A stretch of DNA of 64,000 nt from Octopus sinensis (lineage: Eukaryota), in assembly GCF_006345805.1 (NCBI RefSeq), contig NC_043000.1, positions 11,284,001 through 11,348,000 of the forward strand. The letters run 5' to 3'. Positions within the stretch are counted from its first letter, which is position 1. Each line of letters opens with the position of its first letter. Below the pieces are notes generated by a model. It made no database searches, was not told where the DNA came from, and saw nothing but the letters and a program-made list of their open reading frames with translations. Of the stretch, positions 17,816-62,015 are shown one piece after another. The position numbers and the translations under genes are program-made.

Positions 17816-17817
17816 TT

Positions 17818-34792: not shown

Positions 34793-37700
34793 TTATCTCT
34801 GTCTATGCCCCAAAAGCAGGCCTGCCAAATGAATAGTAGGACCACTTTTATGATATCCTTCTGCAGGCTACCTAAAAGACAAGTGACAATGATCTCATCT
34901 TCATGGCAGGGGATTTCAATGGGCATGTCAGACAGCCGCCCGGTATCTTCCATGGTGTACATGGGGGCCAGAGGATTGGTTCCCAAAACAAAGAGGGAAC
35001 AAGGTTACTGGAGTTCTGTCATGCAAATAACCTATTGATCTGCAACACCAACTTCAGGAAGCCAGTCACCTGATAACCTACCAATCAAGTGACTGTGCTA
35101 GCCAGATTGATTGCATTCTCACCAGACAGTGGGATGCATGGTTGCTCTTAAATACAAAGATCCTCCCTGGTGAAGAATGTACCCACTAGCGTAGACTAGT
35201 CGTTAGTGACTTTAGACTGCAAGCCAAATGGATGCCAAAAACCAGACCAATCTGAAAAAGAAGGATTTGGAAGCTTAAGGATCCTTCGTATGGTTAGAGA
35301 TATAACCCTTGTGTTACTAGCCTGGCTGAAACTGGCTCTGTAGTAGAAATGTCTTGTTTTCATAAGTTTTAAATTTAAATCTTCCACCAAATCTTAGTTG
35401 TAATTTATGTTCCTAACACTCGGAGACTCCCTTCGGTCACGACACAGACCATGGGATTGCACCTAGAAAGTTACCCTCCTAGACACAAGTCTGGGCGAGG
35501 TTGTTTATGGAAGACCAGCAGTCGCCCATGCATACCAGCCTCCCCTCTCCACACCACCAGTCTTATCCAAGGGAAAGACAAAGGTCGATACAGCTTGGCA
35601 CCAGTGACGTCGCAACTCATTTCTACAGCTGAGTGAACTGGAACAACGTGAAATAAAGTGCCTTGCTCAAGAACACAACACGCAGCCCGGTCCGGGATTC
35701 GAGCTCACAACCTCACGATCGTAAGCTCGATGCTCTAACCACTGAGCTTGATGATAACTAAGTTATTTTACTAAATTCTTTGTTATATTTAAAATAATTG
35801 AAAGAAATACAGAATATTTCAAAATAAATACAGTAACAAAATGGTTAAGGACATCCTAATTAGAAATTTGATAAGTGGGAGGAAGAGGAATTACAGACTT
35901 GTGATATAGAGGGCAACAGGGAATTCCTGCAGGACAGCTTGCTGAGTGCCACAGACCAAATCTGCTGTTGGTGCAAAATCCCATCGAAACCTAGGGTGAC
36001 GTGGTGGTGGAACAATGCTGTAGACAGGGCCATTAGAGTAAAGAAACAGGCCTGGAAGAGTGGGAGTAGCAGTTAACTGTATCAGACAGCCAGAAGGGAA
36101 ATTAGGAGACAAGTATATCTAACCAAGGAAGAAGCAGAAAAGAAATTTGCCTATATTCAGTGACTTGAGGACCAATTGCTTGGAATGTTTTGGATTGCTA
36201 GACAGTGTGTAAGAGAAATGTGTGCATGTGGATGATGGTGTACTTGCTTTTAAAGATTCTGTGAAGAAGCTTGGAAATGCCATTATGAAAGACTACTGGA
36301 GAATGAAAGTTTGCCAAATGTTGACACAATTGAGGGACCAGCTATCCAAATCGACAGAACCTGGGTAGATAAAGCAATTAAGGATATGAAGACAGGGAAA
36401 GTCCCTGGCCCATCAGGGATCACCACTGAGATGCTTAAAATATCTGGTGGTGTTGGTTATAGTCTAGTCACCTGTATCGTAAATCAGGTGGTTCACGAAG
36501 GAGTCATACCCAATGACTGGTGTAGCAGCACCATAGTCAAGTTCCACAAAGGTAAAGGTGATGCCTCAGATAGAAATAATTACAGAGGTATCAAATTGTT
36601 GGATCAGGTGATGAAAGTTACAAAGAGAGTCGTAGCCCAACTAATTAGGGAGAGGTTTAGTCGAGAAGAGATGCAGTTTGGTTTTGTGCTGGGGAGAAGC
36701 ACCACTGATGCTATGTTTCTGGTAAAGCAGCTGTAGGAGAAATACATAGGCAAAAATAAACATCTATCTGATGGTCAAATCAGAAACTAGAGATAGACGA
36801 GTGGTTGGTGAGAGCCATGTACAGGGACGCTAACAGTAAGGTGAGGATTGGTAAGGACTACAGTGAAGAATTTAGGTGCAAGTAGTTCACCAAGGATTGG
36901 TCCTCAGCCCCCTCTTGTTCATCATAGCCCTCGAGGCAATAACAGAGGAATTTAAGACAGGCAGCTCCCGGGAGCTCCTCTGTGCTGATAATTTTGTTCT
37001 TAGAGCTGAATCACTGCCAGAACTAAAGAAGAAATTTCAGGTATGGAAGCAAGGTCTAGAATTGGAGAGCCTTAGAGTTAACCTAGCAAAAACCAAAGTC
37101 TTAATAAGTAGGAAACAAATCACAAATCCCTTCAGGAAGATGGCCCTACTCTATATGTAGAAAAGGTGTAGGTAGAAACTCCATAAAATGTTCCCAGTGT
37201 ATGCTATGGATACATAAGAGATGCAGCAATATCAAAGGAAGATGCACAGGTAAAATATACACAGAAAATAGACTCCATCAACTGCTAGCGGTAGATAACT
37301 ACCATTATCTAGGTGACTAAATTAGTAGCAGAGGTGGATACTCTGAGAGCGTAGCTGTGAGAATAAGATTTGGTTGAGCAAAGTTCAGAGAGCCTCTACC
37401 TCTCCTGGCAACAAAGAGCCTCTCCCTTAGAGTCAAAGGCAAATTGTATGATGCCTGTGTGTGAACAGCTATGCTATACGGCAGTGAAACATGGGCTGTG
37501 ACAGCCAAGGGTATGCATAGGCTTGAAAGAAATGAAGCCAGTATGCTTTAGTGAATGTGCAATATCATTATGCTTGTTCGACAGAGTGTAAGCATCTTGA
37601 GAGAAAAGTTAGGCATAAGAGGCATCAGATGTGCTGTTCAAGAGAGATGACTGTGCTGGTATGGTCATGTGATACATATGGAAGAGTACAGCTGTGAAAA

Positions 37701-40801: not shown

Positions 40802-41691
40802 TATGTATGTATGTACGTACGTATGAATTAAGCTACCCATGATGCATTGGGTCACTTGAGTTTCCCAGCAACAGAGTTTGTTTCATGGGTTTTTTTTTTC
40901 CTTTCCAGGTTATTTTGCATGCTTTCAATGAATGTGACATTGAAATCACACGTAAATGGCTCCTTTCCACAGAAAAGGAAAGATTTGACTGCTATTTCTT
41001 GCACGCCCTACTGTTACATGGTAGCAGGGTGTGCTAGAAATAGCCCTAGAGTTACGTGGTAGCAGGGCGTGTTAGAAATAGCAGCCAAATCTTCAGAGCT
41101 GGGATGCATTGAATGCACTCGAAAAAGTTTTTGTAATGGTATTCCCTTGGGGGCGATCTTTCGCTTTGACTCTCAGAACTGTAATCTGGATCAGCTGGTT
41201 TTGTTTTTTAATTTTCCCAAAAACATTTTTATTTATTTACTTTTGGTTTGAAGTGAAAGAGAGGAGAAGGTGAAAGATGTATGAACATGTGTGTGTGTCT
41301 GTGAGAGAGAGAGTGTGTGCCACTTACACATACGAGAACACACACACAGTCATTCACTCACTCTCTCACACACACATGCATATGTACATAGAAAAAAGAT
41401 GTACACATAAGTATGGATGTATGTACGTAAACATGACAACACACCCCTTCACGCACTCTCTTTTGTGCAACCATATGCGTATTACATCATATATATAAAA
41501 GTACAAATTCACTCATAGATTCCCATAAAATTCAAGTTAAAATATAGAATAAATGCATATATGTTATATATGTACAGATACTTGCACATATTCCTCATCT
41601 TTCTCCTGATGTGAAGTTAGTAACTTAATTTAATATGTGATGGTTAAGAGACACTAGATTCTTCACTACAGGATGGAAATATCAGTAATAT

Positions 41692-42052
41692 CATTATCAT
41701 CATCGTTTAACGTCCACTTTCCATGCTAGCATGGGTTGGACGGTTCAACTGGGGTCTGGGAAGCCCGAAGGCTGCACCAGGCCAGTCAGATCTGGTGGTG
41801 TTTCTACAGCTGGATGCCCTTCCTAACGCCAACCACTCCGAGAGTGTAGTGGGTGATTTTATGTGCCACCGACACAGGTGCCAGACGAGGCTGGCAAACG
41901 GCCATGATCAGATGGTGTTTGTTACGTGCCACCAGCACGGAGGCCAGTCGATGTGGTGCTGGCTACGGCCACGTTCGGATGGTTCTCTTATGTGCCACTG
42001 GCACTGGTACCACAAACTACAAATTCCATTGATGTGGATCGAATATTAAAGA
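41692..42052 (-). mobile_element. RTE-tail-type retroposon
   Basis: Same family as 14632. Confidence 0.85.
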
Positions 42053-43429: not shown

Positions 43430-44545
43430 TCACACTTTTGTATGGGTAGATATATGCGAAGTTAAGTTGCACTTTTGAGCAAATGATTTACCACAGATAT
43501 CACATAAATATGGTTTCTCCCCTGTATGAATACGATTATGATTGATTAAGTCACCACTTCCTGAGAACGATTTACTACAGATATCACAATGAAATGGTTT
43601 CTCTCCAGTATGGATACGTTTGTGTTTAGTTAGGTTAGCCCTTTGAGAGAATGATTTACTACAGATATCACAGTAATATGGCTTCTCCCCTATATGAATA
43701 CGCTTGTGTCGAGTCAAGTCACTACTCCCAGAGAACGATTTACCACAGATATCACAGCGAAATGGTTTCTCACCTGTATGCATACGCATGTGCTTGGTTA
43801 AGTCACTATTTCCAGAGAATGATTTACCACAGATACCACAGTGATATGGCTTCTCCCCTGTATGAATTCGCTTGTGGTTGGTTAAAACAGTATTATGAGA
43901 GAATGATTTACCGCAGATATCACAATGATATGGTCTCTCTCCTGTATGCATACGTATGTGTTTCCTTAAATCATTACTTCCAGAGAATGATTTACCACAG
44001 AAATCACAGTGATATGGTTTCTCTCCTGTATGAATACGTTTATGTCTACTTAACTTAGCACTTTCAGAGAATGATTTACTACAGATGTCACAGTGATATG
44101 GTCTTTCTCCTGTATGAATACGTTTGTGAGTAGTTAAGACACTATTTTGAGAGAATGATTTACCACAGATATTGCAGTGAAAAGGTTTCTCTCCTGTATG
44201 GATACGTGTGTGTTTATGTAAGTCACTGCTTCGAGAGAATGATTTACCACAGATATCACAGTGATATGGTTTCTCTCCTGAATGAAAACGTTTGTGTCTA
44301 CTTAAGTTAGAACGCTGGGAGAATGACTGATCACAAATTTCACAATGATATGGCTTCTCCCCTGTATGAATACGTTTGTGTATAGTTAAGACGCTATTTT
44401 CAGAGAATGATTTACCACAGATATCACAATGAAATGGTTTCTCTCCTGTATGAATACGTATGTGTCTAGTTAAGGAAATACCTTTAGAGAAAAATTTACC
44501 ACAGATTTCACAGTGATATGATGTATCTCTCAACTTTTTTGACAT
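43430..44545 (-). CDS. C2H2 zinc-finger protein ZNF-D, 13 fingers, 371 aa
   Basis: Intact [15 protein letters not shown]...SHISTHTKV; ATG at 44545 chosen by paralog context. Confidence 0.95.
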
Positions 44546-44853
44546 CTTTACAAAGAATATAAAAACCCAATCCACTGTCAACTGTGATTTTCATTGAAAT
44601 ATAAAAATGGTGCTGCAAACACCTCAAAAATGTTGAAGTTTAATTAATAGGCAAAAGCACCAGATAATGAAGCAGGGAAATATGTTTTTTTTTTATCTCA
44701 GTTCAGAGCAAATATTTCACAGTAATTTCACCATAAAGTAATAGTAGTATGGTTATATCTGTCAGGTATACAATTTCCCTTTAGTCTTCAAAAGATGACA
44801 AATATTGAAGATGTCTCCAATATAAAAATAAATCCTGTTATGTCAATGTTAAT

Positions 44854-46518
44854 CTGAAATAATAAAGAAACAGTATAAGAAACAGAGGAGAGATCAATAT
44901 GGAAATTTTACATTTCTTTATAAATAAACAAATGACATCGAATACCATTGCATGAAATCTGCATATTTAAGGCATTGCTCCAGCCTGGCTGCAGTCACTT
45001 GACTGAAACAAGTAAAAGAATTTGTAAACTACAGGTAGGTGTGGGGACAATGAATGGATGCACAGTCAACAGATTAGGCAAGGATAAGGGCAAATTGGGT
45101 AATGGTGGGGGAGGGGATGCCCTTATTGGGTGAAGCAGCAAGCTATGAGTTGCAGTTGTGTCTGGATATATATTTTATTTGTTTCAGTAGACTGCAGCCA
45201 TGCTGGAGCACTACCTTGAATTTTTATTCGAATGAATTGACCCCCAATGATTCTGGGTTGCTGGGGGTGGGGGGTCACGCGTAATCAACCCCTTTTCCCA
45301 GAAAAAGGAAAGATTTGGCTGCTATTTCTAGCACGCCCTGCCACCACGTAACAGCTATTTGCGATAGAGGACCCACCGATATTTCGTTCTGAATTAGTTT
45401 TTTGACTCCTTTCCCACTTTCTTTTCCGGTAAAAAGTGGCTTGCAGCGCGTTTGGTGGTCAGATACGTTGGATGCACTCGAAAAAACCTGTGGAAAAAAG
45501 ACTATTTCACTCCGAGGTACGAACGGGCCCTATATTAACCGAAATATTTACCGTTGAAAGTATGCGAAGTAAGGCATTCCTTCGATATAACTCGACAAAA
45601 TCAAAACACTTCACTTCGGCTGTTTCTGTGAAAAGCACGAAAGAAAACAAAAACCCGCGAAACAAAACTCCGTTGGTGGGAACCTTGGAGTTTCCCACCA
45701 CCCTTCCCCTTTTCCTTTTCCGGAAAAAAAGTGGCTTGCAGCAGGTTTGTAGGTCAGATACGTTAAATGGCCTCGAAAAAGCTCGTGGGCATTCTTTCTA
45801 CATAACTCGACAAAATCAAAACACTTCACTTTGGGTATTTCCGTGGAAGCAAATGACAGATCGATTCTGTTTTCTGCTTGGAAATTTGTGGATTTTACAT
45901 ACACACATGAAACAGGTCAGAACAAATATGCAAGGCTTTTTTTTTTCTTCACGTTTAAAACGAGACATTGCTGGCATAATTTCGTTATATATATATACTC
46001 CACAACCCACAGGAATACCCGAAGTGAAATGTTTTGATTTTGTCGAGTTATATCGAAAGAATGCCAGCTCGTGGAAAAAATTATGTCCATTACAGATTTT
46101 TAATTAGCAAACCTGCATTTTATTTTATTTCACATATAACAGTTGAGTGTGTGTTTTTTTTTTTAAAAAAAAACAACATATCAATATTTCACTTGGGAAA
46201 TATAATCCTTTTAGTAAAAGTCAACAAAAGTCAGTTGTTGATTGCCATAACACTGCATCCTTTAAGGCCCTCATGCCTTCCGAAATCCGCCGAAACTACA
46301 CCTGATTATATATAGACTTTAGATGAGTTGTAGTGCACCTGAGCACTGTACACAATTATATTATTATTATTATTATTATAAGACGACGACGGGCGAACAT
46401 CTTTGTTCCAATGTATCTTAAATGGTAGAATTACTGTATTCTTGGAGGGTTCGCGTAATAATTCTGTGATTTACACACACTATTACAGATTTATTCAAGT
46501 AAACCATTGTCAACTTAC
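44854..46518 (-). other. Predicted 5'-UTR intron of ZNF-D
   Basis: Minus-strand donor ACG|GTAAGTTGAC (46518-46513) and acceptor TTATTATTTCAG|ATTAAC (44854). Confidence 0.75.
45421..46075. repeat. Structured intronic repeat: a 47-bp motif twice direct and once inverted
   Basis: GGCATTC.TTC.A.ATAACTCGACAAAATCAAAACA.TTCACTT.GG at 45573 and 45788 (+) and 46019 (-); TTTTCCGG.AAAAAGTGGCTTGCAGC at ~45422 and ~45716. Confidence 0.8.
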
Positions 46519-46815
46519 CGTTTTCAACATGACAACAGTGAGCAAACTGCAAAGGAAATTATCTCGTTGTTAGTTTTGGCTTTTCCAAAGACTATTCCAC
46601 TTTATTCTACGCCATTAACGGTCAGATAATTTCCCTCTCTAGACATCGATTCGTATCTGTCTCTAATATATTGTCTTAACGTTTGAGTATTTATTTTCTA
46701 CCAGCGATATTAAATCAATATAGAAATTCTAATCGTAATTATTTCTACATCTGCATTTATGCATATGTAGATACATCTGCACTTAATGTACTTCAGTTAT
46801 AAACGCCTTTTCTTT

Positions 46816-46965
46816 TTCCGCCGAGGTCGACTTTGCCTTTCATCCTTTCGGGGTCGATAAATAAAGTACCAGTTTCGCACTGAGGTCGATGTAATCGACT
46901 TAATCCATTTGTGTGTCCTTGTTTGTCCCCTCTATGTTTAGCCCCTTGTGGGTAGTAAAGAAATA
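46816..46965 (+). mobile_element. 5'-truncated SINE (GGCAG-head family)
   Basis: 18-bp TSD TATAAACGCCTTTTCTTT at 46798-46815 and 46966-46983. Confidence 0.9.
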
Positions 46966-47290
46966 TATAAACGCCTTTTCTTTATATATCAATCCAGTGC
47001 AATTTGACCGAACTATTAGGTCTACATTTAGCAATAACCGCTTGATAAGTAAAACTGTTTAATTCCTTTTTTAATTATGACTAAATAACACATCATAGAA
47101 CCGTCGTGGTCGACTATAATTCTTCTTTCAGAGTAATTAAATAATTTTGATATCGGAAATATTATTCTCGGCGTTTCTCTTCTAAGCATTGTGAATCATT
47201 ACCTTATTATAAAACAATATACCTTAAAGCAATACATATATTTAATATACATTTAAACAAAGGATAAATGTAATGCCAGATATACACAGA

Positions 47291-47524
47291 TATATATATT
47301 TCTTTACTACCCACAAGGGGCTAAACATAGAGGGGACAGACAAAGGGAGTAAGTCGATTACATCGACCCAGTGCGAAACTGGTACTTTATTTATCGACCC
47401 CGAGAGGATGAAAGGCAAAGTCGACTCGGCGGAATTTGAACTCAGAACGTAACGGCAGACGAAATACCGCTTTAAGGATATTTCGCCGGCGGCTAAACGT
47501 TTTCTGCCAGCTCGCCGCCCTCCG
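47291..47524 (-). mobile_element. SINE (GGCAG-head family), full length
   Basis: 12-bp TSD GATATACACAGA at 47279-90 and 47525-36; absent from the paralogous ZNF-C promoter. Confidence 0.9.
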
Positions 47525-47733
47525 GATATACACAGACGGAAGTGCCAAGTGATTAGATACGGAATTGATTGTCTAGAGCTCTGGAAAAAGCTAAGATCTC
47601 CCAACATTTATGTCGTAGAAAAAAAGGGGGGTCAAAACGTTTTTGAAATTCCCAAACACTTACAACGAAATAATGTCTTTGGAGTTTGGTCGATACAGAT
47701 TTATTGTTTGACATACGAGAAACGGGTTAAGTT

Positions 47734-50041
47734 GTAAGTTGACAACGATTTACATGAACAAATCTGTAATGTATTATCGAAAAATAGAATTTATGTTGTG
47801 AACTCTGTTAACCATTCTGGTGCACCTAGCACCGATAAATATTTCATTATATTAAAATCTATACAAGTGACAACTACAATGTTAGAACAATGATATTCAC
47901 TTGCTGTCTCCGTCTTCTTGTTGACTTTCACAGACAGGATAATACTTCCAAGCTGAAATGTTGACCTGTTATTTTTGAAAGAAAAAAATAAAATACTTCA
48001 GTGTTCCATGTAATATAAAGTAAATTACAGATTTGCTAATTGAAAACATTTTCATGCTGCTAGTCATGCATAGATATTCTCTTCCACACCGCATGATACT
48101 CTGAAATATCTGATTAAACATAATTCAAACAATAACAATAAATAAAATGGCATTCCTTCTTTACTAGAACTAACTTGTCAAAACTAAGGAATGCTTTTAA
48201 TTCTGATCATTTTATTTTTTCTTTTATTGTTAAAGTTGATATGATGTGCATCTTTTGTAATAACCATAATTCATCGATGGTCGGGATATGGAATGTGAAA
48301 GAAATGTCTGCAATCAGATAGATGGGTTTTAGTGACTCTTGATGTCGATTTAGAGATGGTTTACAATAACTTATTGATTTAACTAGTTGTTATAATAATC
48401 TATTCAATTCAGCATTTAAGAAAAAGTAATGGAGAGTAGAGTTAATATGAATGACAATGGGTGAGTGGGAAATAGAAATTTACAGCTAAAAATACAGATT
48501 TGTTGTCTGTATTTTGCGTTTGAAAAGAATGCTTGTGCAATTCTCAAACAGCCAAATGCTTCAACTAATATCATTGCTATTTATCCCTTCCATCACTAAT
48601 GTATTATAAGGGATAATTTATGAGCATGGCTGCTGTATATGGGTTTAAACTTGATAAGAGATGTATGAGCAGATAGACATAAATACTACTCAGATATATA
48701 TATATATATACAGGACTGCACACAAACAAATATATAAATATATGGATACTTGTATATACACAAATGTACCTGATACATATGTACTGACATGTGAATGTAT
48801 GCATTCATCATGATTGTACTCTGTCAGGTCTGACCTAGGCCCAAACGGTGAGCTTTTGAGAAAGCCTCAGTATGGTCATTTTAACTGCTAGAAAGAACAG
48901 CCACGTTCATTAGCATTACCCCACCCCCACCCATATCCTCTCTGTCCTGTCAACCTCCCCCCCCCACATTTCATCCCCTCACACCCATCACTTCTCTATC
49001 ACCTGAAAGCCGAGTAGGCACATACTACATACTCTGGTTTCCTCAGTCACCTTTCGTCCCTCGCCCCAAACCACTCCCATTTTCCATTATCTATCCCTGC
49101 CTATTGTCTTCATCAATCACCTCCTTTCTGCACCTTCTCTCCCCTGTGCTGCTCTCCATCATTAACATCTTATCTATCAACCTCAATGCCCTCATATATC
49201 TACAACACTACCTGCCCCGAGCCTCTTGTACTTCTTTCCATCATTTGCTACAGTCACCTCTATCCTGCTCACTAGCCCAGTTCAAGCCTCTATTTAACCT
49301 CGCCTATTCTCACCATGTCCAATGTCATGTCCAGACACATTTTCACCATTATCTCTCCCACTATTGCTCTCCTTATTCTCTAACTCACTGCCCTGTATTT
49401 TCCAACTAGAGCATCCAGGTATCCACAGCAAGGCACCTACTCTGCCCCTCTATATATTTAATCTCTCAACTGGCACAAAGTCCTACCACCTCAATATTAC
49501 TTCACCCTCTCAGCTGGGGTTTTACCTCTTTTTTTTTTTTTCTAGCAATGCACTTGGTGACCTTGTTGGTGATGGTGCCACATAAAAAGCACATAAAGGG
49601 CTTCAATCTGTAGAAACCATATCAAAACAGACAATAAAGCCTGATATAACTCCCAGTCTTGCCAGCTCCTGTCAAACCATTCAACCCATGCCAAACATAA
49701 CAATTATGACGATGATGGCTAATGTAGTCCTGAAAATACAGAAACTGAAGAAAAGACAGGATAGTCATGGATGTAATGTTTTTGATCATAAGTTTGTTCA
49801 ATCAGGGCTGATCTTAGGCTAAAGTGTATTGAAAAATGATGTTCCTCATGAAAGAAGAATGTTAATGTCCACTATTCCGTTGTTTAATATAACGGTATAC
49901 AATGTGAAGGTGTAACTGTAGTTTATAAACATGTAGATTTCCTACTATTTTATAGGACATAATTTGTTTCTCAATATAGAAATGTTAAATTTCCATGTTT
50001 ATCTCTCCCTTGTATCTTATATTGTTTCTTTGTTATTTCAG
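47734..50041 (+). other. Predicted 5'-UTR intron of ZNF-E
   Basis: Donor GTAAGTTGAC at 47734, preceded by a degenerate duplicate GTTAAGTT; acceptor TTATTTCAG|ATTAAC at 50041. Confidence 0.7.
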
Positions 50042-50460
50042 ATTAACGGATGAAATTGGCATAAAAGAACTTTTTTACGTTGGATATATCTTCTATATTT
50101 ATCATCTCTTGAAGATTAAGGAGAATGTTATACAGAAGAGATATAAACCTTGTACGATAAATCTATGGCAGAATGAAATACTGTGAAATACTTGCTCTCA
50201 ACTGAGATTAACAGTAGCATTTCTCTATGTCCTGTCTGATGTGTTTGAATTCTAAGTAAACTTGGATGAATTTCAAAGAGTTCTGAAGATATTTAGATTT
50301 CAGTGAAGATTACAGCTGAAAGCAGTGGAAATACTTGTAAGCAATAAATGGCAACTAGAAGAAAAATCAAAGTATACACTGTGGTGGCAAAGATAGATAA
50401 AGGAAAAGTTTAACACGGTGAAAACTTTAAGGATTTGGTCTATTTTTGTCACTTGAAGAG

Positions 50461-52413
50461 ATGTCAAAAAATAGACAGAAATCATCTTATCATTGTGGTG
50501 TATGTGGTAAAATATTCTCTGCAAAAAATGTTTTGACTAAACACCAACACGTTCATGCAGGAGAGAAGTCATTTAACTGTGAAGCTTGTGGTAAATCATT
50601 CTCTCAAATTGATAAGCTGAGGTCTCACAAATGTATTCATACAAGAGAAAAGCCATTTCACTGTGATATTTGTGGTAAATCATTCAGGACAAGTAGTCAT
50701 GTAACTATACACAAGCGTATTCATACAGGAGAGAAACCATTTCACTGTGATGTTTGTGGAAATTCTTTCTCTCAAAATGGTATTTTAACTAGACACAAGC
50801 GTATTCATACAGGAGAGAAGCCATATTCCTGTGACACCTGTGGCAAATCCTTCTCTCATAGTAATGTTCTGATTAATCACAAGCGTATTCATACAGGGGA
50901 GAAACCATATTGCTGTGACGTCTGTGGTAAATCATTCTCACAAAATAGTACGTTAATGAAACATGAACGTATTCATACAGGGGAGAAGCCATATCACTGT
51001 GATATCTGTGGTAACTCATTCTCTGTAAGTTGTAGTTTAACTACTCATAAACGTGTTCATACAGGAGAGAAGCCATTTCACTGCGATATCTGTGGTAAAT
51101 TCTGCTCAACTGCGAGTCAAATAAGTTTTCATAGACGTATTCATACAGGAGAGAAACCATATCGCTGTGAAATCTGTGGTAAATCATTCTATCGAAATTC
51201 TTTGTTAACTTTACACAAACGTATTCATACAGGAGAGAAACCATTTCATTGTGACGTCTGTGGTAAATCATTCTCTGTATGTAATGCCTTAACTACTCAC
51301 AAGCGTATTCATACAGGAGAGAAGCCATATCACTGTGATATCTGTGGTAAATCATTCTCTAACCGTAATATCTTAATTTGTCATACACGTATTCATACAG
51401 GGAAGAAGCCCTATCATTGTGATATTTGTGATAAATACTTCTCACAAAATAGTACCTTAGCTAAACACAGACGTATACACACAGGTGAAAGACCATTTCA
51501 GTGTCATATTTGTGGAAAATCATTCTCTCGAATGGATCACTTAGTTAAACACAAACGTATTCATACAGGGGAGCGACCATTTCACTGTGATGTTTGTGGT
51601 AAGTCATTTCTTGCAAGTAGTGCTTTAACTACTCACAAACATATTCATACAGGAGAGAAGCCATATCACTGTGATATCTGTGGCAAATCGTTTTCTGGAA
51701 GTAGTGAGTTGACTAAACACAAACGTATTCATACTGGAGAAAAGCCATACCACTGTGATATCTGTGGTAAATCTTTCTCTGTAAGTAATGCCTTAACTGT
51801 TCACAAGCGTATTCATACAGGAGAGAAGCCATATCACTGTGACGTTTGTGGTAAAACTTTCTCAGTAAGTAATGCATTAAGGAGTCACAAACGTATTCAT
51901 ACAGGGCAGAAGCCATATCATTGTGATATCTGTGATAAAAGCTTCTCACAAAATAACACCTTAACTAAACACAAACGTGTACATACAGGAGAGAAACCTT
52001 TTCAGTGTCATGTTTGTGACAAATCATTTTCTCGAATAGATCATGTCATTAAACACAAGCGTATTCATACAGGAGAGAAACCCTTTCAGTGTGATGTTTG
52101 TGGTAAATCCTTTGCAACAGGTGGTTCCTTAACTTCTCACAAACGTATCCATACTGGGGAGAAGCCATATCATTGTGATATCTGTGGTAAATCATTTTCT
52201 GGAAGTAGTGAGTTAACTACTCACAAGCGTAGTCATACAGGAGAGAAGCCATATCATTGTGATATTTGTGGTAAATCATTCTCTTACTGTAATGTCTTCA
52301 TTTATCACAAACGTAGTCATACAGGTGAGAAGCCATATCAGTGTGATATCTGTGGTAAATCCTTCTCTCAAAGTGGTAATTTGACTAAACACAAACGTAT
52401 CCATAGAGAATAA
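50461..52413 (+). CDS. C2H2 zinc-finger protein ZNF-E, 23 fingers, 650 aa; a 24th finger lies behind the stop
   Basis: ORF MSKNRQKSSYHC...HKRIHRE*; in-frame PFHCNMCGK...SHVSIH follows the TAA. Confidence 0.95.
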   Translation: MSKNRQKSSYHCGVCGKIFSAKNVLTKHQHVHAGEKSFNCEACGKSFSQIDKLRSHKCIHTREKPFHCDICGKSFRTSSHVTIHKRIHTGEKPFHCDVCGNSFSQNGILTRHKRIHTGEKPYSCDTCGKSFSHSNVLINHKRIHTGEKPYCCDVCGKSFSQNSTLMKHERIHTGEKPYHCDICGNSFSVSCSLTTHKRVHTGEKPFHCDICGKFCSTASQISFHRRIHTGEKPYRCEICGKSFYRNSLLTLHKRIHTGEKPFHCDVCGKSFSVCNALTTHKRIHTGEKPYHCDICGKSFSNRNILICHTRIHTGKKPYHCDICDKYFSQNSTLAKHRRIHTGERPFQCHICGKSFSRMDHLVKHKRIHTGERPFHCDVCGKSFLASSALTTHKHIHTGEKPYHCDICGKSFSGSSELTKHKRIHTGEKPYHCDICGKSFSVSNALTVHKRIHTGEKPYHCDVCGKTFSVSNALRSHKRIHTGQKPYHCDICDKSFSQNNTLTKHKRVHTGEKPFQCHVCDKSFSRIDHVIKHKRIHTGEKPFQCDVCGKSFATGGSLTSHKRIHTGEKPYHCDICGKSFSGSSELTTHKRSHTGEKPYHCDICGKSFSYCNVFIYHKRSHTGEKPYQCDICGKSFSQSGNLTKHKRIHRE

Positions 52414-52984
52414 CCATTTCACTGTAATATGTGTGGTAAATTAATCACCCAAAAATGTATCTTGGCTTCACATGTATCTATCCATACAAATGTGACTAGC
52501 ATTGTCAAAATTCATTACATTTTACAACAGCAAACAATATTTTAAAACCATTTTCCATTATAAATCATGGATTCACATTATGCACTGAGAAGTAATCCAC
52601 GACAATAATTATATATATGGTTCTGTTTTTGAAGTAATGTTCTTTAAACTGATGCACTTTCTTATGTCAACCCTTGCAGTGGTGTCTTACCTTGGATACA
52701 CATATTTTATATGGACATGTGCTATTTTTTTTCAAGTTCAATGTATGTATGAAATAACTCATATAACCATAAATGTATTTGTGGAAGGAAGATATTGCAT
52801 AATGATAACAAGTGGTTATGACTATATTTTATATTACTGCAGCTATATCTCTTCATTGGTTATGTAATATATTATTGTGATATTTTCAATAAAAGTATAT
52901 TCATATATATTCTGTGTAACATATTATACAAATATTTTTTTTATTGTTATTGTTTTTCAGTGTTCAGTGAAAAAATATGTTTAA

Positions 52985-53203
52985 CCCTCTAGTGTTCAGA
53001 TTATTCTATCAAACATAATGCTTATTGATTCTCATTGATTTGAATTAATCATGCATTATCTCATATCTTCAAGATCTTGATGGTGTAATTACTTAATGTA
53101 GAATAACATTGTAGGGTAGGTGTGAGAGCCTGGATCTGGTCAGTTTGAACATAAAACAGATTAAATATTTTGGCCGGATATGGCCGGTTTAAATACTAAA
53201 GGG
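52985..53203. mobile_element. piggyBac-type MITE (second family)
   Basis: TTAA|CCCTCTAGTGTT ... AATACTAAAGGG|TTAA. Confidence 0.85.
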
Positions 53204-53389
53204 TTAAAGTTCCCTAAAGATGTGGAGACATGATACATAACATATTTTCATGACTCCTAACATTGTATTTTGCAGGAGAAAATATATGTTTGAGAAAAAT
53301 AAACAAACAAAATATAAATTGCACCAGCACTAATCATTGATATGGTTAATAAGAGACCTATTGAGTCAAGTCAACATCAACATCAAAAT

Positions 53390-53696
53390 AAATATCAAAG
53401 CACCATCCGAACGTGGCCGATGCCAGCGCTGCCTCGACTGGCTTCTGTGCCGGTGGAACGTAAAAAGCACCAACCAATTGTGGCCGCTGCCAGCCTCCCC
53501 AGGCACCTGTGCTGGTGGCACATAAAAAGCACCCACTACACTCACGGAGTGGTTGGCGTTAGGAAGGGCATCCAACTGTAGAAACACTGCCAAATCAGAG
53601 TGGAGCCTGGTGCAGCCTCCTGGCTTCCAGACCCCGGTCGAACCGTCCAACCCTTGCTAGCACGGAAAACGGACGTTAAATGATGATGATGATGAA
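53390..53696 (+). mobile_element. RTE-tail-type retroposon with (GAT)n tail
   Basis: Same family as 14632 and 63120. Confidence 0.85.
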
Positions 53697-53946
53697 TAAC
53701 ACTGGTCTGCATTTGGGAATTTTTAAATTTTTATTTTTGTTGATGGATGTGATCTGTATTCTTGAATTGCTGATTTTAAATATCAAAGCTATTTTGCGCT
53801 ATCACATAAGGATTTTCAATAAAATATAAATTAATGATAAAAAATGTGAATTTTTAATAAATTATTACTTTATTAAAATGAACCAAATAGTCATGGAAAA
53901 GCATGTTCTATTAATTTTAAGAACATATGTATTCCAAGTCAACATC

Positions 53947-54363
53947 GGATCTTTTCGGTTTGAACGGCAGTTTTTTAAAATAATTTCCACGTAACTAAAC
54001 ACTTTTAAACTTCGTATACTGGTAGAATGTGTCACATAAAACATCTTTTTCTCTTGGCTTTATTGAGAAAATTCTATAGTTTTTAAGATACTTGTTGTTG
54101 TTTTTCTTCAATTTCTGTAATTTCAACCAATCAATGACGTCTATTGAGGTGAAAACATTCTGTGCCATATGAATATGTCCCTCGTTTAAGAAACAGATTG
54201 GCTTCATTTACATTTCTGAAGAAAAAAAGATACCCTTCCCCCACCCCTATCCCTAACCCTAAAACAGATTGAAATGTAATAGATCGATACTAGGGTCTTA
54301 ATTATGGCTGACAATTTCATATGACACCGCTAGAAAAAACTGCCGTTCAAACTGAAAAGATCT
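53947..54363. mobile_element. Complete GGATC-terminal MITE with 8-bp TSD
   Basis: TIRs GGATCTTTTCGGTTTGAACGGCAGTTTTT / AAAAACTGCCGTTCAAACTGAAAAGATCT; TSD TCAACATC / TCAACATG. Confidence 0.9.
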
Positions 54364-54439
54364 TCAACATGAAATGATTCATGTTTACCATGAATCATCA
54401 AAATTCTGCTTCATGATGTTGGTACCAACTGAATGTTTC

Positions 54440-55035
54440 AGGAACTAGAAGCTTGTATTCCTTCAGTCTAGAGCCAAGTAACTGTGCACATTCTTTTGGA
54501 AGGTTGAGGTCTCTGACAAAGTCACTTCGTTGAAGAGATTGAAATTGTCATTTGTTGGTGGTTTATTGTGTACTTCCATCTCATTAGTATCACCAGCACC
54601 AGACTTTGATGAAATTACCCATGTCTCAAGTGCCACAGGTACGGGAATATTATCTGAGTATGGAACAGGCCTTATTATTGATGGAAAATTTGGGTATATT
54701 ATGTGATCCTTAGTCTTATTTAATCCAGCTACTTTAGTCATATAGAAGCAGCAGTCATCAAGGTGGTTCATTTGCTCTCACCATACCATTGGTATTACAG
54801 AGAGCATACGTTTCAGATTTCAAACTGACCACATTTGGAGCTTACTAATACAACTCTTGCAAGCTTTGTGAGGTACAAATAGCTTGTCCTGGTCTCCACA
54901 TTTGCAGCCAAAATAAGCTAAATAGCAGCACTTCAACAAAGGAGTAATATTGCTCCAGGAATCTGAAGGTGTGAAATGCTTGTCATAGCAGAATATGTCT
55001 GGTGAATTTATGCAGCCTCTAGACACATTCACAAT
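54440..55035 (-). mobile_element. Degenerate N-terminus of a Cys/His-rich DNA transposase (family unassigned)
   Basis: C.NSPD.FCY, AYFGCKCGDQDK..PHKAC..C, PMVW..Q.NH.DDC and YPNFPSIIRPVPYS across frames. Confidence 0.6.
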
Positions 55036-55620
55036 CTGACAATAAAGAAGAATATTTTAGATTCAATATTTAAGTCTATATAAGGTAAACATTTTCATAG
55101 GTCATACACTTCATCATTTATTTATATAAAAAGAGAAAAGTACTGTTTCTATATAACTTGAGAACCTGATGTGCTAAAGATGAAACTATGAATTACTGCT
55201 TTTCATATATATTTCACAAAAGATACCATACAGTCAATAAAAAAAGTCATGCACACCAGAATAATTCAGTTTGGACATGTGTAAAGTGTATTACAATAAA
55301 CATTGACGTCTAGGGAATTTTCTTTATCACTAGAATCATAACTTCACTAAACGTAACTCATCAATCTCGAAAGCATGAAAGGCAATGTCGACCATGGCAC
55401 TAGCTGACGGTTAATATTCTCCACACTAACAATACTGCGGCCATTACCAATTGGGAGCAGCTGAGCATGGCTTTTGTTCAGGGATATGTAGCCCATCATC
55501 CTCCCTCTCCATCTGTTTTACAGACCCCTAGTTTTTTCTTTTCTTTTTTTTTTTGCTGTTTCTTTGTACTTAAATGTTATGAAGAAAAAAATAGAACATA
55601 TTTATCACTACTTTAATAAA

Positions 55621-56212
55621 CTAGAAAAGCACTCGGAGAGTGCAGACCCCTTATTTTTCCATTGTTCCCATAAATAAAAAAATCACCATACATATTATAT
55701 AAGCATGAATATTGCACGGAACTGCACTTATGCGCATGCATCAAGTGATTGATGATATAAAAAAACTTAGTTCAATTTTTTAAAAAATATACTTATCACT
55801 ATTCACCCACCATCATCATCACTCTCTGTGTTTCTTTAACCTCTCCATCAAAACATTACCCCTTAGCTAAAATTATATGCATAGATTTATAGTGAAACAG
55901 CAAATTGATCATGGCATGTGAAGCCCTCTCTACAATCACTTGATATACTAAAAGTAACAGCTAAATATCTGGAGAATTTTTGTGCTTGTGTGTGTGCTTA
56001 TCCAAATGAGCAGAGAAATAAGTACACAGAAATATATTTTACATACCTGTCATATACAGCTGTTTTGTTTTTTCACTTTAAAGGTAAACAATTCAGATAG
56101 AAGCAATTACCTTGCTGTTAGTTCAATCCCAATAAAGTACTACAAGTTTAGTCACTGGCTCAGCACCTATGTTTGTGTGCTTCATACCAAAATGATAAAA
56201 ACTTTAATATAG
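55621..56212 (-). mobile_element. Helitron-like element (3' hairpin and CTAG on the minus strand)
   Basis: Plus strand A|CTAG-AAAA-GCACTC-GGA-GAGTGC; 55875-56212 is the reverse complement of 57630-57998. Confidence 0.55.
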
Positions 56213-57299
56213 TGAAGGTGCATGGCTCAGTGGTTTGAGCATCGGGTTTACGATTGTGAGGTTGTGAGTTCGAATCCCGGACCGAGCTGTGTGTTGTGTT
56301 CTTGAGCAAGACACTTTATTTCACGTTGTTCCAGTTCACTCAGCTGTAGAAATGAGTTGCGACGTCACTGGTGCCAAGCTGTATCGGCTCCTTTGTCTTT
56401 CCCTTGGATAACATCAGTGGCGTGGAGAGGGGAGGCTGGTATGCATGGGCGACTGCTGGTCTTCCATAAACAACCTTGCCCGGACTTGGGTGACTTTCTA
56501 GGTGCAATCCCATGGTCAGTCATGACTGAAGGGGGTCCTTAATATACTTCCCAAATGGGACTTCATCTATGTGTATCTGTGTGCGTATATGTGCAGGTGT
56601 TGGTGCACAAGAAAAACATTTACGGAAATGAACTTGCACAATGGTACACCTCTGAATTTCTTTTTAATTGTGATAATGAAACAAAGGGTTTAGCCCTTAT
56701 CACCAAAATTTATTTCCCTTGCATTTTCTCTCTTTTACAGTATTTAATTAAAAGGGGGAATATGTTGTTACCAACAACATTAAAGCTTTACTAAATTGAT
56801 CGATCTGTCATTGAACTAGGATTTTAATTCCATTTGATAAACACCTTGCTATCATTTATATGGAGAATTGCAAACATGGCATATAAAGATAACTTATTTT
56901 AATAGAAATTTTATGAGTATATTGCCATAAATGCCTGTCACCTACATTGGGAGTGGTAATGACTAGGGTCCTGTAACTGACTGCTTATTGTGATCATTCG
57001 TCTTTTGGTTTCCTGTAGCTTTGCTCTCTTTTACAAACCCAGTGAACATATATTTCCTATTTCAAAGAAATTCAAACAATAGATATAAGACCCAAGTTAA
57101 AAAGATTTTCAACAATTCAACTTCTCTGGTTGACATTAAGATGCCCACCCCCAATAGGGGCATTAACTCTCACATTTTAGAGCTCCATGACCACCATTTT
57201 TCAGGAGCAAAATCCTTTTAACAGGTTCTATAAGACTGGAATTTTGGAATATGCATATAAAAATCAGTAGTATGGGATACATGTGGCACGATTACAATT

Positions 57300-57450
57300 T
57301 TGCTTGGGGGTGTAAAGAGGGAAATAACCCTCATCTGCAATTTTGATGAAATTCGAAACATAGGTATTCCAGTTCATTACAGAAAATATAACAGAAAAGT
57401 CTAATTCTTCAATTGTATGTAACTTGGGCAACGCCGGGTAACTCTGCTAG
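57300..57450 (+). mobile_element. Helitron 3' end (5' boundary uncertain)
   Basis: GGGCAACGCCGGGTAACTCTGCTAG|T, the same terminus type as at 12000. Confidence 0.6.
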
Positions 57451-57454
57451 TATA

Positions 57455-57628
57455 TATATATATATACGATGGGTTTCTTCCAGTTTCCATCTACCAAATC
57501 CACTCACAAGGCTTTGATCAGCCTGAGGATATAGTGGAAGACTCTTGCCCAAGGTGCCACACAGTGAGACTGAACCCAGAACCATGTGGTTGGGAAGCAA
57601 GCTTCTTACCATACAGCCACTCCTGCAA
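57455..57628 (-). mobile_element. Partial ATAGGCGCAGG-head SINE
   Basis: Reverse complement of the 5' half of 58806. Confidence 0.8.
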
Positions 57629-58140
57629 CTATTATGTTAAAGTTTTTATTATTTTGGAAGGAAGAACACATACATAGGTGCTGAGCCAGTGGTGACAAAA
57701 TGTGTAGTATTTTGTTGGGATTAATCCAATGAATTGACAGCAAGGTCATTGCTGCTATCAGAATCATTTACCTTTAAAGCAAAATAAAAAAACTGACGTA
57801 TACGACAGGTATGTAAAATATATTTCTGTGTACTTCTTTCTCTGTTCATTCGGATAACCTGTAGAAATTGTAGCGAGCGCGTACACACAAACACAAAAAC
57901 TCTCCAGACATTTAGCTGTTATTTTTAGCCTATCACGTTTCGCGGCGAGGGCTTCACATGTTGCGATCCTTTTGCTGTTTCACTATAAATCTATGCAAAC
58001 GGACAAAACGGTCATTCATTTTCACTCTTAGACAGCGGGATGGGGTGGCGATGTGTGTGTGGATCAATTTTGGAGTTTTTCATAAAAAAATTCGAAATTA
58101 AAATTTGTTCCCCCACCCTATATTCTTAATCTCCGTATTT

Positions 58141-58540
58141 GGATCTTTTCGGTTTGAACGGCAGTTTTTCTAGCGGTGTCATATGAAATTGTCACCCATA
58201 ATTATGACCCTAGTATCGATCTATTGCATTTCAATCTGTTTTAGGGTTAGGGTTAGGGGTGGGGGACGGGTATTTTTTTTTTCTTCAGAAATGTAAATAA
58301 ACCCAATCTGTTTCTTAAACGAGGGACATATTCATACGGCACAGAATGTTTTCACCTCAATAGACGTCATTGATTGGTTGAAATTGCAGAAATTGAAGAA
58401 AAAAACAACAAATATCTTACAAACTATATAATTTTCTCAATAAAGCCAAGAGAAAAAGATGTTTTATAAACACATTCTACCAGTATACGAAGTTTAAAAG
58501 TGTTTAGTTACGTGGAAATTATTCTAAAAAACTGCCGTTA
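58141..58540. mobile_element. GGATC MITE, inverted relative to 2337/53947, one end truncated
   Basis: Interior is the reverse complement of 53947-54363. Confidence 0.85.
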
Positions 58541-58805
58541 TTTTTCCACGTAGATTGAAAAAAAAATTCGATAAAAAGTTAAAAATTAGAAATTTAGGTG
58601 TGTGTATGTAAGGGTGGGATTGAAAATTAAAAAAAAAAACCGGGTTTTTTTTTTTGCATATTCGGAATCTCTGTCATCGAAAATATAGGAATCCGGTCAA
58701 ATAAAATTTAAAAAATCGTAGAGGTCGGTTTTTTGAGATGGTGGGGATGAGTGTGCACCAGGTCAGCCTAGGATTTTATAATAATAATAATAATGAAATT
58801 ATTGT

Positions 58806-59215
58806 ATACAGGCGCAGGAGTGGCTGTGTGGTAAGTAGCTTGCTTACCAACCACATGGTCCCGGGGTCAGTCCCACTGCGTGGCACCTTGGGCAAGTGTC
58901 TTCTGTTATAGCCCCGGGCCGACCAGAGCCTTGTGAGTGGATTTGATACACAGAAACTGAAACAAGCCCGTCGTATATATGTATATATATGTGTGTGTAT
59001 GTGTTTTTGTGTCCGTGTTTGTCCCCCTAGCATTGCTTGACAACCGATGCTGGCGTGTTTATGTCCCCGTCACTTAGCAGTTCGGCAAAAGAGACCGATA
59101 GAATAAGTACTAGGCTTACAAAGAATAAGTCCCGGGGTCGAGTTGCTAGATTAAAGGCGGTGCTCCAGCATGGCCGCAGTCAAATGACTGAAACAAGTAA
59201 AAGAGTAAAGAGAGT
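58806..59215 (+). mobile_element. Full-length tRNA-derived SINE (ATAGGCGCAGG head)
   Basis: GGCGCAGGAGTGGCTGTGTGGTAAG head, GG(T)TCAGTCCC B-box-like motif, CCTTGGGCAAGTG, internal (TA/TG)n and a GACTGAAACAAGTAAAAGA tail. Confidence 0.88.
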
Positions 59216-60649: not shown

Positions 60650-60850
60650 TGGCACGCGGTCAGAAAGGTCCGGGGAGGAGGTACGTCGATTACATCGACC
60701 CCAGTGCTCAACTGAACATATTTTATCGAATCCGAAAGGATGAAAGGCATAGTCGACGTCGGCGGAATTTGAACTGGGAACGTACAGATGGACGACATGC
60801 TGCTAAGCACTTTTTCCAGCGTGCTGACGGTTCTGCCAGCTCGCTGCCTT
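60650..60850 (-). mobile_element. SINE related to the GGCAG-head family
   Basis: GTCGATTACATCGACCCCAGTG, GAAAGGATGAAAGGCA and GCGGAATTTGAAC are shared with 4092 and 47291. Confidence 0.8.

Positions 60851-61968: not shown

Positions 61969-62015
<47 letters not shown>

Follow-up and report, generated by a model that had tools for sequence, protein, structure and literature searches.

The question raised by this locus is whether two ZNF genes that stand head to head over a short spacer were multiplied as a pair. In the stretch of Octopus sinensis DNA analysed here (64,000 nucleotides, hereafter the window), the original prediction had taken such a pair, on a bidirectional-promoter cassette, for the duplication unit of the cluster. 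The list of open reading frames (ORFs) with translations showed five C2H2-ZNF ORFs complete in the 64-kb window and a sixth cut off after its start:

3121-3993, plus strand, ZNF-A ORF
12955-14259, plus strand, ZNF-B ORF
28534-30402, plus strand, ZNF-C ORF
43430-44581, minus strand, ZNF-D ORF
50446-52413, plus strand, ZNF-E ORF
~63950, plus strand, ZNF-F ORF, start only, running off the window

ZNF-D and ZNF-E (D and E below, and likewise for the others) were the sole divergent pair among these genes. The ORF, acceptor and donor are all on the minus strand for D and all on the plus strand for E, and the two genes face each other with their 5' ends; four of the six genes are solo and tandem-oriented. 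First exons, intron blocks, acceptor regions and 3' flanks could be aligned among the ZNF genes, and homology of the six genes thus reached their non-coding parts, as in a segmentally duplicated C2H2-ZNF cluster. From acceptor to ATG, identity was 77-85% within {A,B,D}, 71-83% within {C,E,F} and 68-71% between the two groups, a split which bore out the claim that the D/E pair joins two finger subfamilies.

Vertebrate KRAB-ZNF clusters have undergone lineage-specific expansion by tandem or segmental duplication. In coleoid cephalopods, lineage-specific expansion of C2H2-ZNF clusters by tandem or segmental duplication has also been reported, with a description of tandem clustering and no mention of promoter sharing (PMC9795677, PMC13218726). 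The present cluster resembles such expansions in its clustered poly-ZNF paralogues, in homology that runs through UTRs, introns and flanks, in intergenic DNA rich in transposable elements, and in mosaic genes produced by recombination between paralogues. Unlike the tandem clusters, it has one inverted member, which creates the divergent pair. The D-E locus holds the divergent 5' ends of two paralogues in such a segmentally duplicated C2H2-ZNF cluster.

The family appears to share a gene plan in which a short non-coding exon 1 would be followed by an intron of 1.2-2.3 kb and by a single large exon with a 300-420-nt 5'UTR, the entire finger array and the 3'UTR. A first-exon block of ~130-180 nt, beginning with AGATACGAATTGATGTCTA and ending at a donor composed of G followed by GTAAGTTGACAA, was found five times in the window, each time on the strand of a ZNF ORF that begins 1.2-2.3 kb further downstream, and its motif counts were matched by 0 of 100 shuffles. 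The acceptor motif of 20 nt (TTTCTTTATTATTTCAG followed by ATT) occurred six times, once per gene, against a chance expectation of 0.01. We call these blocks exons because of the conserved splice signals and their position, and they are probably start-proximal. The predicted structures are as follows:

850-1003, plus strand, ZNF-A first exon
11253-11380, plus strand, ZNF-B first exon, D-type by the orientation of its spacer
25810-25973, plus strand, ZNF-C first exon
46519-46658, minus strand, ZNF-D non-coding first exon, minimum extent, with edge motif AGATACGAATCGATGTCTA at 46658-46640
46519-46507, minus strand, ZNF-D donor motif, G followed by GTAAGTTGACAA
44854-46518, minus strand, putative ZNF-D intron 1, with a conserved block at 46097-46227 and ~215-bp repeats at 45408-46065 (self-BLAST, alignment)
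44546-44853, minus strand, 5'UTR of ZNF-D exon 2, after the conserved acceptor TTTCTTTATTATTTCAG (motif 44870-44851; alignment and motif count)
43430-44545, minus strand, ZNF-D coding region with ATG at 44545, 371 aa, 13 C2H2 fingers, A/B/D subfamily (ORF list and translation, ATG context aligned with the paralogues)
47555-47733, plus strand, ZNF-E non-coding first exon, minimum extent, with edge motif AGATACGGAATTGATTGTCTA at 47555-47575
47733-47745, plus strand, ZNF-E donor motif, T followed by GTAAGTTGACAA
47734-50041, plus strand, putative ZNF-E intron 1, its 5' 450 nt C-like, its middle unalignable with C and its 3' 450 nt F-like
50042-52413, plus strand, ZNF-E exon 2, 5'UTR 50042-50460 and coding from ATG 50461, 650 aa, ~23 fingers, C/E/F subfamily

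Compared directly, the D and E first exons gave a short match (37 bp, 89%, expect value 1e-7). Both blocks matched the first exon of A, with expect values of 3e-46 for D (75.6% over 246 bp) and 1.5e-24 for E, and the E region 47549-48148 aligned with the C first exon and intron start at 88.7% over 613 bp. The D and E arms could be aligned no further than the exon-1 edges. The D donor (46519) and the E donor (47733) are 1,214 bp apart, and the pair was thus correctly described as starting ~1.2 kb apart from homologous, inverted first exons.

Between the exon edges, the D-E spacer measures 896 bp and divides into four parts:

46659-46797, no strand assigned, D-proximal ancestral spacer, common to the C and B copies and without homology to the canonical proximal promoter
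46798-46983, plus strand, SINE1 with its duplications, a 5'-truncated copy at 46816-46965
46984-47278, no strand assigned, middle ancestral spacer and E-side canonical proximal promoter (~47161-47290), the promoter part common to A, C and the B-copy orphan
47279-47536, minus strand, SINE2 with its duplications, a 234-bp antisense copy at 47291-47524

The two SINEs with their target-site duplications account for 414 of the 896 bases (46%); before them the ancestral spacer was ~480 bp, so that the D-E spacing was nearly doubled by the two insertions. SINE1 is flanked by a perfect 18-bp duplication (TATAAACGCCTTTTCTTT, 46798-46815 and 46966-46983) and SINE2, which lies 19 bp upstream of the E first-exon block, by a perfect 12-bp duplication (GATATACACAGA, 47279-47290 and 47525-47536). 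Since the duplications differ, the insertions were independent. A three-way spacer alignment showed both sites empty in the C and B copies. Perfect target-site duplications, one 5'-truncated copy, dispersed relatives and empty paralogous sites are also what is seen for SINE insertions into promoters. The original prediction had overlooked the SINE content of the spacer. SINE superfamilies are known from cephalopods, Ceph-SINEs being named in PMC4824008; neither ARAGORN nor Rfam detected a tRNA-like head in the two spacer SINEs. By eye alone, the GTTCAAATTCC stretch of the SINE resembles a T-arm.

The cassette is asymmetric, with the canonical family proximal promoter on the E side only. The upstream flank of D had no significant similarity to this promoter as found at A, C, E and the B orphan (local-alignment shuffle p = 0.05-0.53). 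On the E side, a ~38-bp deletion and SINE2 damage the promoter, which may be impaired, and the expression of E may therefore be weak or under different control.

Elsewhere in the window the non-SINE spacer was found at three places only, all upstream of ZNF genes. It recurs in direct orientation upstream of C, inverted upstream of B and in part upstream of A, just as had been claimed:

25341-25973, plus strand, direct cassette copy at C, the entire SINE-free ancestral spacer (25341-25809) and the C first exon (25810-25973)
9685-10183, minus strand, inverted spacer copy at B, 70-75% identical to D-E
10184-11235, no strand assigned, ~1.04 kb insertion between B spacer and B first exon, with TSD-like A[C/T]GT[T]AAAAA at both ends
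719-1003, plus strand, copy at A, the canonical proximal promoter (719-849, E-side orientation) and first exon (850-1003)

The C spacer is 81-86% identical to that of D-E; its homology ends at the position of the D exon edge, and no D-type exon is present. The B copy carries an orphan canonical proximal promoter (GATGGAAAGTGCATTTAA, 9750-9733, minus strand) and, beyond it, the first ~30 bp of a partner's exon 1 (9706-9685, minus strand), where homology ends. At A the spacer part is direct and ~75-130 bp long. The ~1.04 kb insertion at B contains an internal inverted repeat of 91 bp. With this insertion between spacer and exon 1 and a frameshift after the ATG, B is decaying. Identity was 69-77% between the C and B spacers, and the three comparisons (DE-C, DE-B and C-B) together place the B split first. 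An orphan promoter with the start of a partner exon indicates that the B upstream region descends from a head-to-head state. By the time of the B split, a D-type exon already bounded the cassette at one end, and an E-type promoter with the beginning of its exon lay at the opposite end.

This history bears directly on the proposal that a D-E type pair, an A/B/D gene and a C/E gene with a shared bidirectional promoter, is the duplicated unit, that B and C are survivors whose partners were deleted, and that partners are co-expressed and may cooperate. The partner promoter and exon start kept by the B copy agree with it, as does a cassette older than both copies, and the C copy ends exactly where the D exon edge would be. 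At both B and C the copy stops no more than 6-30 bp from a partner exon edge; two random duplication breakpoints would be unlikely to fall there, and loss of a partner gene could leave such ends as well. However, genes stand on both sides in only one of the three full cassette copies, D-E itself, and no orphan donor, exon body or finger remnant was found on the partner side of B or C. The complete spacers of B and C stand at different divergence from D-E, and therefore B and C are not the two halves of one duplicated pair. The solo, tandem orientation of four genes and the lack of a first exon for F within the window also speak against a paired unit.

The mosaic structure of E argues against it as well. 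The 5' cassette of E is nearest to C (82-92%), and the E-C gene bodies are 70-80% identical. In the region before the ORF, by contrast, E is 83% identical to F versus 74% to C, and the 3' part of the E intron is also nearest to F. This mosaicism indicates that units were reshuffled by recombination or gene conversion. Thus, the head-to-head anatomy and the descent of the B copy from a head-to-head state stood up, and the repetition of a two-gene unit did not. A paired duplication unit is not demonstrated, and we regard it as unlikely.

Divergent pairs are known as repeat units in the histone H2A-H2B and H3-H4 genes, in the mouse Mup gene/pseudogene pairs and in head-to-head plant NLR pairs. 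Like these, D and E are head-to-head paralogues over a short spacer that is older than later local duplications. Unlike these systems, in which the two-gene unit is reiterated, both genes are present here in one of three copies, and the copies differ in age.

The recurrence of the spacer does not need repetition of a two-gene unit, because each gene copy or conversion tract would have taken its upstream region along. We favor, with a probability of about 0.6 for the account as a whole, an old inversion that formed the asymmetric D-E cassette, followed by copying with single genes, exchange and SINE insertion. Long ago an A/B/D-type gene would have been inverted, or duplicated in inverted orientation, with a breakpoint at the 5' edge of its first exon, and would have come to lie ~480 bp upstream of one of C/E type, pointing the other way. 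D and its derivative B adjoin the far end of the E upstream region. Later, D with the entire spacer and ~30 bp of the partner exon would have been copied inverted to give B. The spacer, exon 1 and ~450 nt of intron would have become common to E and C by duplication or gene conversion, and the two independent SINE insertions then brought the D-E spacer to 896 bp. On this account the D-E locus is an ordinary ZNF-cluster rearrangement, by inverted and tandem duplication.

We then considered the cassette as a promoter. CpG observed/expected was 0.97-1.27 in all cassette copies, compared with 0.54 for the entire window and 0.26-0.37 for the introns of E and C, and the mean of the copies was reached by 0 of 5,000 random samplings. 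The D-E cassette without its SINEs had the value of 1.27. CpG-undepleted copies in a CpG-depleted locus fit promoter function, and from this pattern we infer that the D-E cassette is probably a promoter region hypomethylated in the germline, with transcription of D and of E leading outward from it. With both genes so transcribed, the cassette would count operationally as a bidirectional promoter. A value of 1.06 was also obtained for the non-functional, orphan B spacer, and causes besides promoter hypomethylation could explain why the CpGs were kept. In the C-E comparison, conservation of the spacer does not exceed that of the intron beside it, and hence the sequence gives no evidence of selection on the spacer.

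Bidirectional promoters are operationally defined by divergent genes whose start sites are <1 kb apart; they are typically CpG-rich or CpG-undepleted, although this is not strictly defining, and homologous head-to-head pairs are often co-expressed. Like them, D and E are divergent, with a CpG-undepleted exon-edge interval of 896 bp (ancestrally ~480 bp) that is flanked at either end by a strong 5' splice site no more than 140-180 nt away. The two genes may be co-regulated. Unlike known bidirectional promoters, the D-E cassette is asymmetric, with its canonical proximal promoter on one side, and has absorbed two SINEs; nor is there evidence in it of one common core element.

Start sites could also lie elsewhere than at the D and E exon-1 blocks. 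In that case the conserved blocks would not be start-proximal exons; transcripts would begin either at an exon still further upstream or just before the large exon, and the D-E interval would be an ordinary intergenic or intronic remnant without a shared promoter. The apparent lack of a block at F, the ~70 nt past the putative donor that are conserved as well as the exon and could belong to another conserved element, and the tolerance of two SINEs and a deletion within the supposed promoter are compatible with this. Nevertheless, the GTAAGT donor is perfect, and both it and the 17-nt polypyrimidine-CAG acceptor occur once per gene, correctly ordered and on the expected strand; the intron around these signals has diverged beyond alignment, and CpG observed/expected peaks at the blocks and collapses in the introns. 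Such a displacement of the start sites is quite improbable.

That the spacer is a dispersed transposable element, close to ZNF genes by coincidence, is very improbable: SINE makes up 46% of the present spacer, and its parts have dispersed matches at 4079-4287, 25131-25182, 60298-60369 and 60681-60848, unlinked to ZNF 5' ends, but outside D-E the SINE-free ~480 bp has just three matches in the window, all of them collinear with a ZNF first exon and lacking target-site duplications or terminal repeats.

Around the favored history of inversion and single-gene copying, a wider set of ideas can be drawn, which taken jointly we hold to be doubtful. The D lineage would have lost its own promoter at the breakpoint and would use the upstream antisense side of the E-type promoter region, so that inverted duplication into a nucleosome-free promoter edge would be an expression route for new ZNF paralogues. 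Gene conversion would spread or homogenise the 5' cassette among paralogues, and the two subfamilies would in this way become linked in their regulation. Within ~30 bp of first-exon edges lie five breakpoints or insertions that arose independently; such edges would be start sites in open chromatin and hot spots of rearrangement.

Some animal genomes, those of coleoid cephalopods among them, are characterised by large lineage-specific ZNF expansions; to our knowledge, how new ZNF copies acquire regulated expression is poorly documented. Paired genes as the organising principle of the ZNF expansion are not shown by this locus. What the D-E locus offers is a clean, datable series, in which an inverted copy was joined at its first-exon edge to the upstream region of a neighbour, the cassette was then copied with single genes, 5' cassettes were exchanged between paralogues and SINEs were inserted. 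If D and E are indeed divergently transcribed, the locus would show step by step how an inverted duplication can lead to a shared promoter.

The six C2H2-ZNF genes of the window (ZNF-A to ZNF-F) belong to a well-known class, the segmentally duplicated C2H2-ZNF clusters; for cephalopods, C2H2 expansions via tandem duplication have been described (PMC9795677; PMC13218726). ZNF-A, B, C, E and F are carried on the plus strand, and the open reading frames (ORFs) are as follows.

3121-3993, plus strand, ZNF-A ORF
12955-14259, plus strand, ZNF-B ORF
28534-30402, plus strand, ZNF-C ORF
43430-44581, minus strand, ZNF-D ORF
50446-52413, plus strand, ZNF-E ORF
start ~63950, plus strand, ZNF-F ORF, which runs off the window (acceptor at 63576)

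The window is AT-rich eukaryotic DNA (G+C ~37%) that is depleted of CpG (observed/expected 0.54), and interspersed repeats and retroelement fragments are abundant throughout. When every ZNF ORF and the transposable-element ORFs were looked up by exact match in the searchable protein collections, none was found, and a homology search with ZNF-E was saturated with generic poly-ZNF proteins of at most 60% identity. The only named relatives of two transposable-element ORFs were from Octopus sinensis (60%) and O. bimaculoides (65%), and an ENA contig with a relative had only 79% transposable-element similarity to the window; these matches point, weakly, to a cephalopod origin.

The intergenic DNA between the ZNF units contains three retroelement ORF fragments, 5484-5954 (minus), 6521-6967 (minus) and 36311-36736 (plus), two of them reverse-transcriptase-like and the third, of 148 aa, uncharacterised. 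Among named proteins, the closest to the 36.3-kb fragment comes from Octopus sinensis (60% identity). Between ZNF-B and ZNF-C lies a 4.07-kb tandem segmental duplication (14856-18906 and 19002-23066, 98.4% identical) with mariner-like ORF remnants inside it (17330-17644, 21490-21804). It is flanked by copies of a ~300-bp dispersed repeat (14632-14990, 18902-19136) and looks like the product of recent unequal recombination between repeat copies. Further copies of this repeat, which holds internal tandem units of 63-67 bp, are at 41691-41986, 53397-53695, 63143-63441, 32437-32616 and 350-423. The repeat sits 0.4-2 kb past the 3' ends of ZNF-B, C, D and E, and also in the intron of ZNF-F and upstream of ZNF-A, with no constant orientation relative to the genes.

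All complete genes share a first-exon block of ~130-180 nt that opens with AGATACGAATTGATGTCTA and closes at the donor G/GTAAGTTGACAA (exon-edge motif and donor written AGATACGAATTGATGTCTA ... GGTAAGTTGACAA). Exactly five such blocks were found in the window, each on the same strand as, and 1.2-2.3 kb upstream of, a ZNF ORF; when the motif counts were checked against 100 shuffles, 0/100 reached the observed counts.

850-1003, plus strand, first exon of ZNF-A
11253-11380, plus strand, first exon of ZNF-B
25810-25973, plus strand, first exon of ZNF-C
46658-46519, minus strand, first exon of ZNF-D
47555-47733, plus strand, first exon of ZNF-E

No usable reading frame runs through the block, which would make it a 5'UTR exon. 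A 20-nt polypyrimidine-CAG acceptor is present in six copies in the window, one for each gene and lying 300-420 nt before its ATG. ZNF-D and ZNF-E had been described as starting ~1.2 kb apart from homologous, inverted first exons, and this holds: the donors are inverted and 1,214 bp apart. Direct similarity between the two exons is short (37 bp, 89%), and the exon of ZNF-A is matched strongly by both (E = 3e-46 and 1.5e-24). The proposed division into two ZNF subfamilies was likewise borne out, with acceptor-to-ATG identities of 77-85% within A, B and D, 71-83% within C, E and F and 68-71% between the groups, and with extra sequence before the ATG in C, E and F. Motif searches found no first-exon block or donor in the whole 10 kb upstream of ZNF-F; in this region (52900-64000), E-like intron and 5'UTR sequence is present from 62830 on. 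Intron 1 of ZNF-D holds several repeat units of ~60-90 bp, one of them inverted (45408-46065); this segment is locally CpG-rich (observed/expected ~1.3) and is overlapped by a spurious 223-aa ORF (45436-46107).

The D-E spacer between the two first exons (46659-47554, 896 bp) holds one SINE-like retroposon twice, once in each orientation. Every other copy of the non-SINE spacer sequence in the window lies upstream of a ZNF gene and runs collinear with a first exon. All three recurrences named in the original prediction were found.

25341-25809, direct, complete spacer copy at ZNF-C, 81-86% identity to D-E
10183-9685, inverted, complete spacer copy at ZNF-B, 70-75% identity to D-E
719-849, spacer copy at ZNF-A, of which only the last ~130 bp survive

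At ZNF-B, an insertion of ~1.04 kb (10184-11235) with target-site-duplication-like A[C/T]GT[T]AAAAA at both ends cuts the first exon off from the spacer. A canonical proximal promoter segment, directly upstream of the exon edge, is common to ZNF-A, ZNF-C, ZNF-E and the far end of the spacer copy at ZNF-B; within it, GATGGAAAGTGCATTTAA is identical at 797-814 and 9750-9733. By eye, the inverted homology seemed to continue into the flank upstream of D; this was rejected when local alignment scores of the flank with this segment were not above those of shuffles (p = 0.05-0.53). The inverted homology of D and E therefore ends at the exon edge.

The two retroposon copies in the D-E spacer are as follows.

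46816-46965, plus strand, SINE1, 5'-truncated, perfect 18-bp target-site duplication TATAAACGCCTTTTCTTT
47291-47524, minus strand, SINE2, 234 bp, perfect 12-bp target-site duplication GATATACACAGA

That these two young SINEs make up nearly half of the spacer is an important addition to the original observation. Searches of the SINEs for tRNA and Rfam matches gave none. In a three-way alignment with the SINEs removed from D-E, both target sites were single-copy and uninterrupted in the C and B copies, so each insertion has a target-site duplication as well as an empty site. The SINEs were therefore inserted after those copies arose, and the ancestral spacer was ~480 bp. The SINEs and the donors have a common symmetry centre at ~47125, which prompted the reading that a palindrome with arm-to-arm gene conversion had carried them; this was ruled out by the different perfect target-site duplications and by the empty sites in B and C. 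The distances from the exon edges are also asymmetric, at 158 bp for D against 19 bp for E. Within the putative promoter the two SINEs make up an inverted repeat of ~150 bp (46816-46969 and 47293-47434, 90% identical, arms 323 bp apart), which could fold into a hairpin in the DNA itself or in upstream transcripts. Other SINE copies in the window (4079-4287, 25131-25182, 60298-60369 and 60681-60848) have no tie to ZNF 5' ends; the last lies ~3.1 kb ahead of the ZNF-F ATG.

The spacer copy at ZNF-B is bordered on one side by a D-type first exon; on the other it carries the canonical promoter and ~30 bp from the first exon of a partner (9706-9685, minus strand), and homology goes no further. Since both sides are represented in this copy, the head-to-head state predates the split of B. 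The three-way alignment gave spacer identities of 81-86% for DE-C, 70-75% for DE-B and 69-77% for C-B, which makes B the outgroup. Most simply, the D lineage would derive from an inversion or inverted duplication; the breakpoint would lie at the first-exon edge and would have fused D's exon edge to the distal end of the upstream region of an E-type gene. C's copy ends ~6 bp from the position of D's exon edge, and the D-type exon is absent. Its origin by retroposition of an unspliced read-through RNA was set aside, since the intron is retained with no visible poly(A) tail or target-site duplication. The canonical ATG of ZNF-B (12900) is out of frame with the fingers owing to a 1-nt shift in an A5C5 run (12900-12960); if this frameshift is not a sequencing error, ZNF-B has probably become a pseudogene, or else a gene truncated at its N-terminus.

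We also compared ZNF-E (47549-50460) with ZNF-C (25804-28620) and ZNF-F (62830-63903). E and C are 82-92% identical over the spacer, the first exon and ~450 nt of the intron; the middle of the E intron cannot be aligned with C, and identity falls to 70-80% from the 3' intron part through the 5'UTR to the ORF start. Over this latter stretch E is closer to F than to C, with 83% against 74% before the ORF. ZNF-E is thus a mosaic, which indicates crossover or gene conversion within intron 1. The higher E-C identity in the 5' cassette (spacer, first exon and start of the intron) implies that the cassette was exchanged between paralogues after the gene bodies had diverged.

The original prediction took the divergent pair as the duplicated unit of the cluster, and this is only partly supported. 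The cassette is indeed old, was copied at least twice and left a partner scar in B's copy; however, the two-gene unit is not repeated. Genes lie on both sides in only one of the three full cassette copies, and neither the body of a partner exon nor a remnant of fingers is left at B and C. Orphan partner exons beside B and C were rejected, since searches with the donor and exon-edge motifs returned only the five known copies and sensitive local alignments to the left of the C copy and past the stub at B were at chance (p = 0.2-0.38). A metagenome scan with the donor block gave 48 loci, all chance matches of 20-30 bp. B and C each have a full spacer, and the two spacers differ in age, which excludes B and C as the two members of a single duplicated pair. 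Moreover, all the genes but D share one strand, and F has no first exon in the 10 kb upstream. Copying of single genes with their upstream DNA, or conversion tracts including it, explains every copy.

Five independent end-points sit no more than ~30 bp from a first-exon edge. Three are the D junction and the boundaries of the C and B copies; the others are SINE2, 19 bp upstream of the exon block of ZNF-E, and the 1-kb insertion at ZNF-B, ~7 bp upstream of that gene's exon block. This clustering would fit open-chromatin start sites acting as hot spots of breakage and integration, and partners may also have been pruned at a common site.

CpG observed/expected is 0.97-1.27 in every cassette copy, compared with 0.54 in the window and 0.26-0.37 in the E and C introns, and the observed mean was reached in 0/5,000 random samplings. 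Where gene bodies are methylated, CpGs retained in this way are a sign of DNA that is unmethylated in the germline, typically that of promoters. On this compositional basis we infer a promoter role for the cassette. Strong 5' splice sites lie within 140-180 nt on either side of the spacer. Against a tightly constrained shared promoter, C-E conservation is no better in the spacer than in the neighbouring intron, E's canonical proximal segment is disrupted by SINE2 and a ~38-bp deletion, and CpGs are kept in the orphan B copy too.

In orientation and CpG composition, D-E fits the definition of a bidirectional promoter of a paralogous head-to-head pair and, at the level of sequence, would resemble one operationally. 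In histone pairs, Mup pairs and paired NLRs, however, the repeat unit is the divergent pair, and D-E lacks this defining feature; because the two-gene unit is not reiterated in the window, D-E stands outside these families. The description that fits the locus best is an old inverted ZNF paralogue that shares the promoter-like upstream region of its neighbour, with a cassette that would later have travelled along when single genes were copied or converted. As a further example of known phenomena, the locus is of modest interest unless expression shows real promoter sharing or mixed-subfamily divergent pairs predominate genome-wide.
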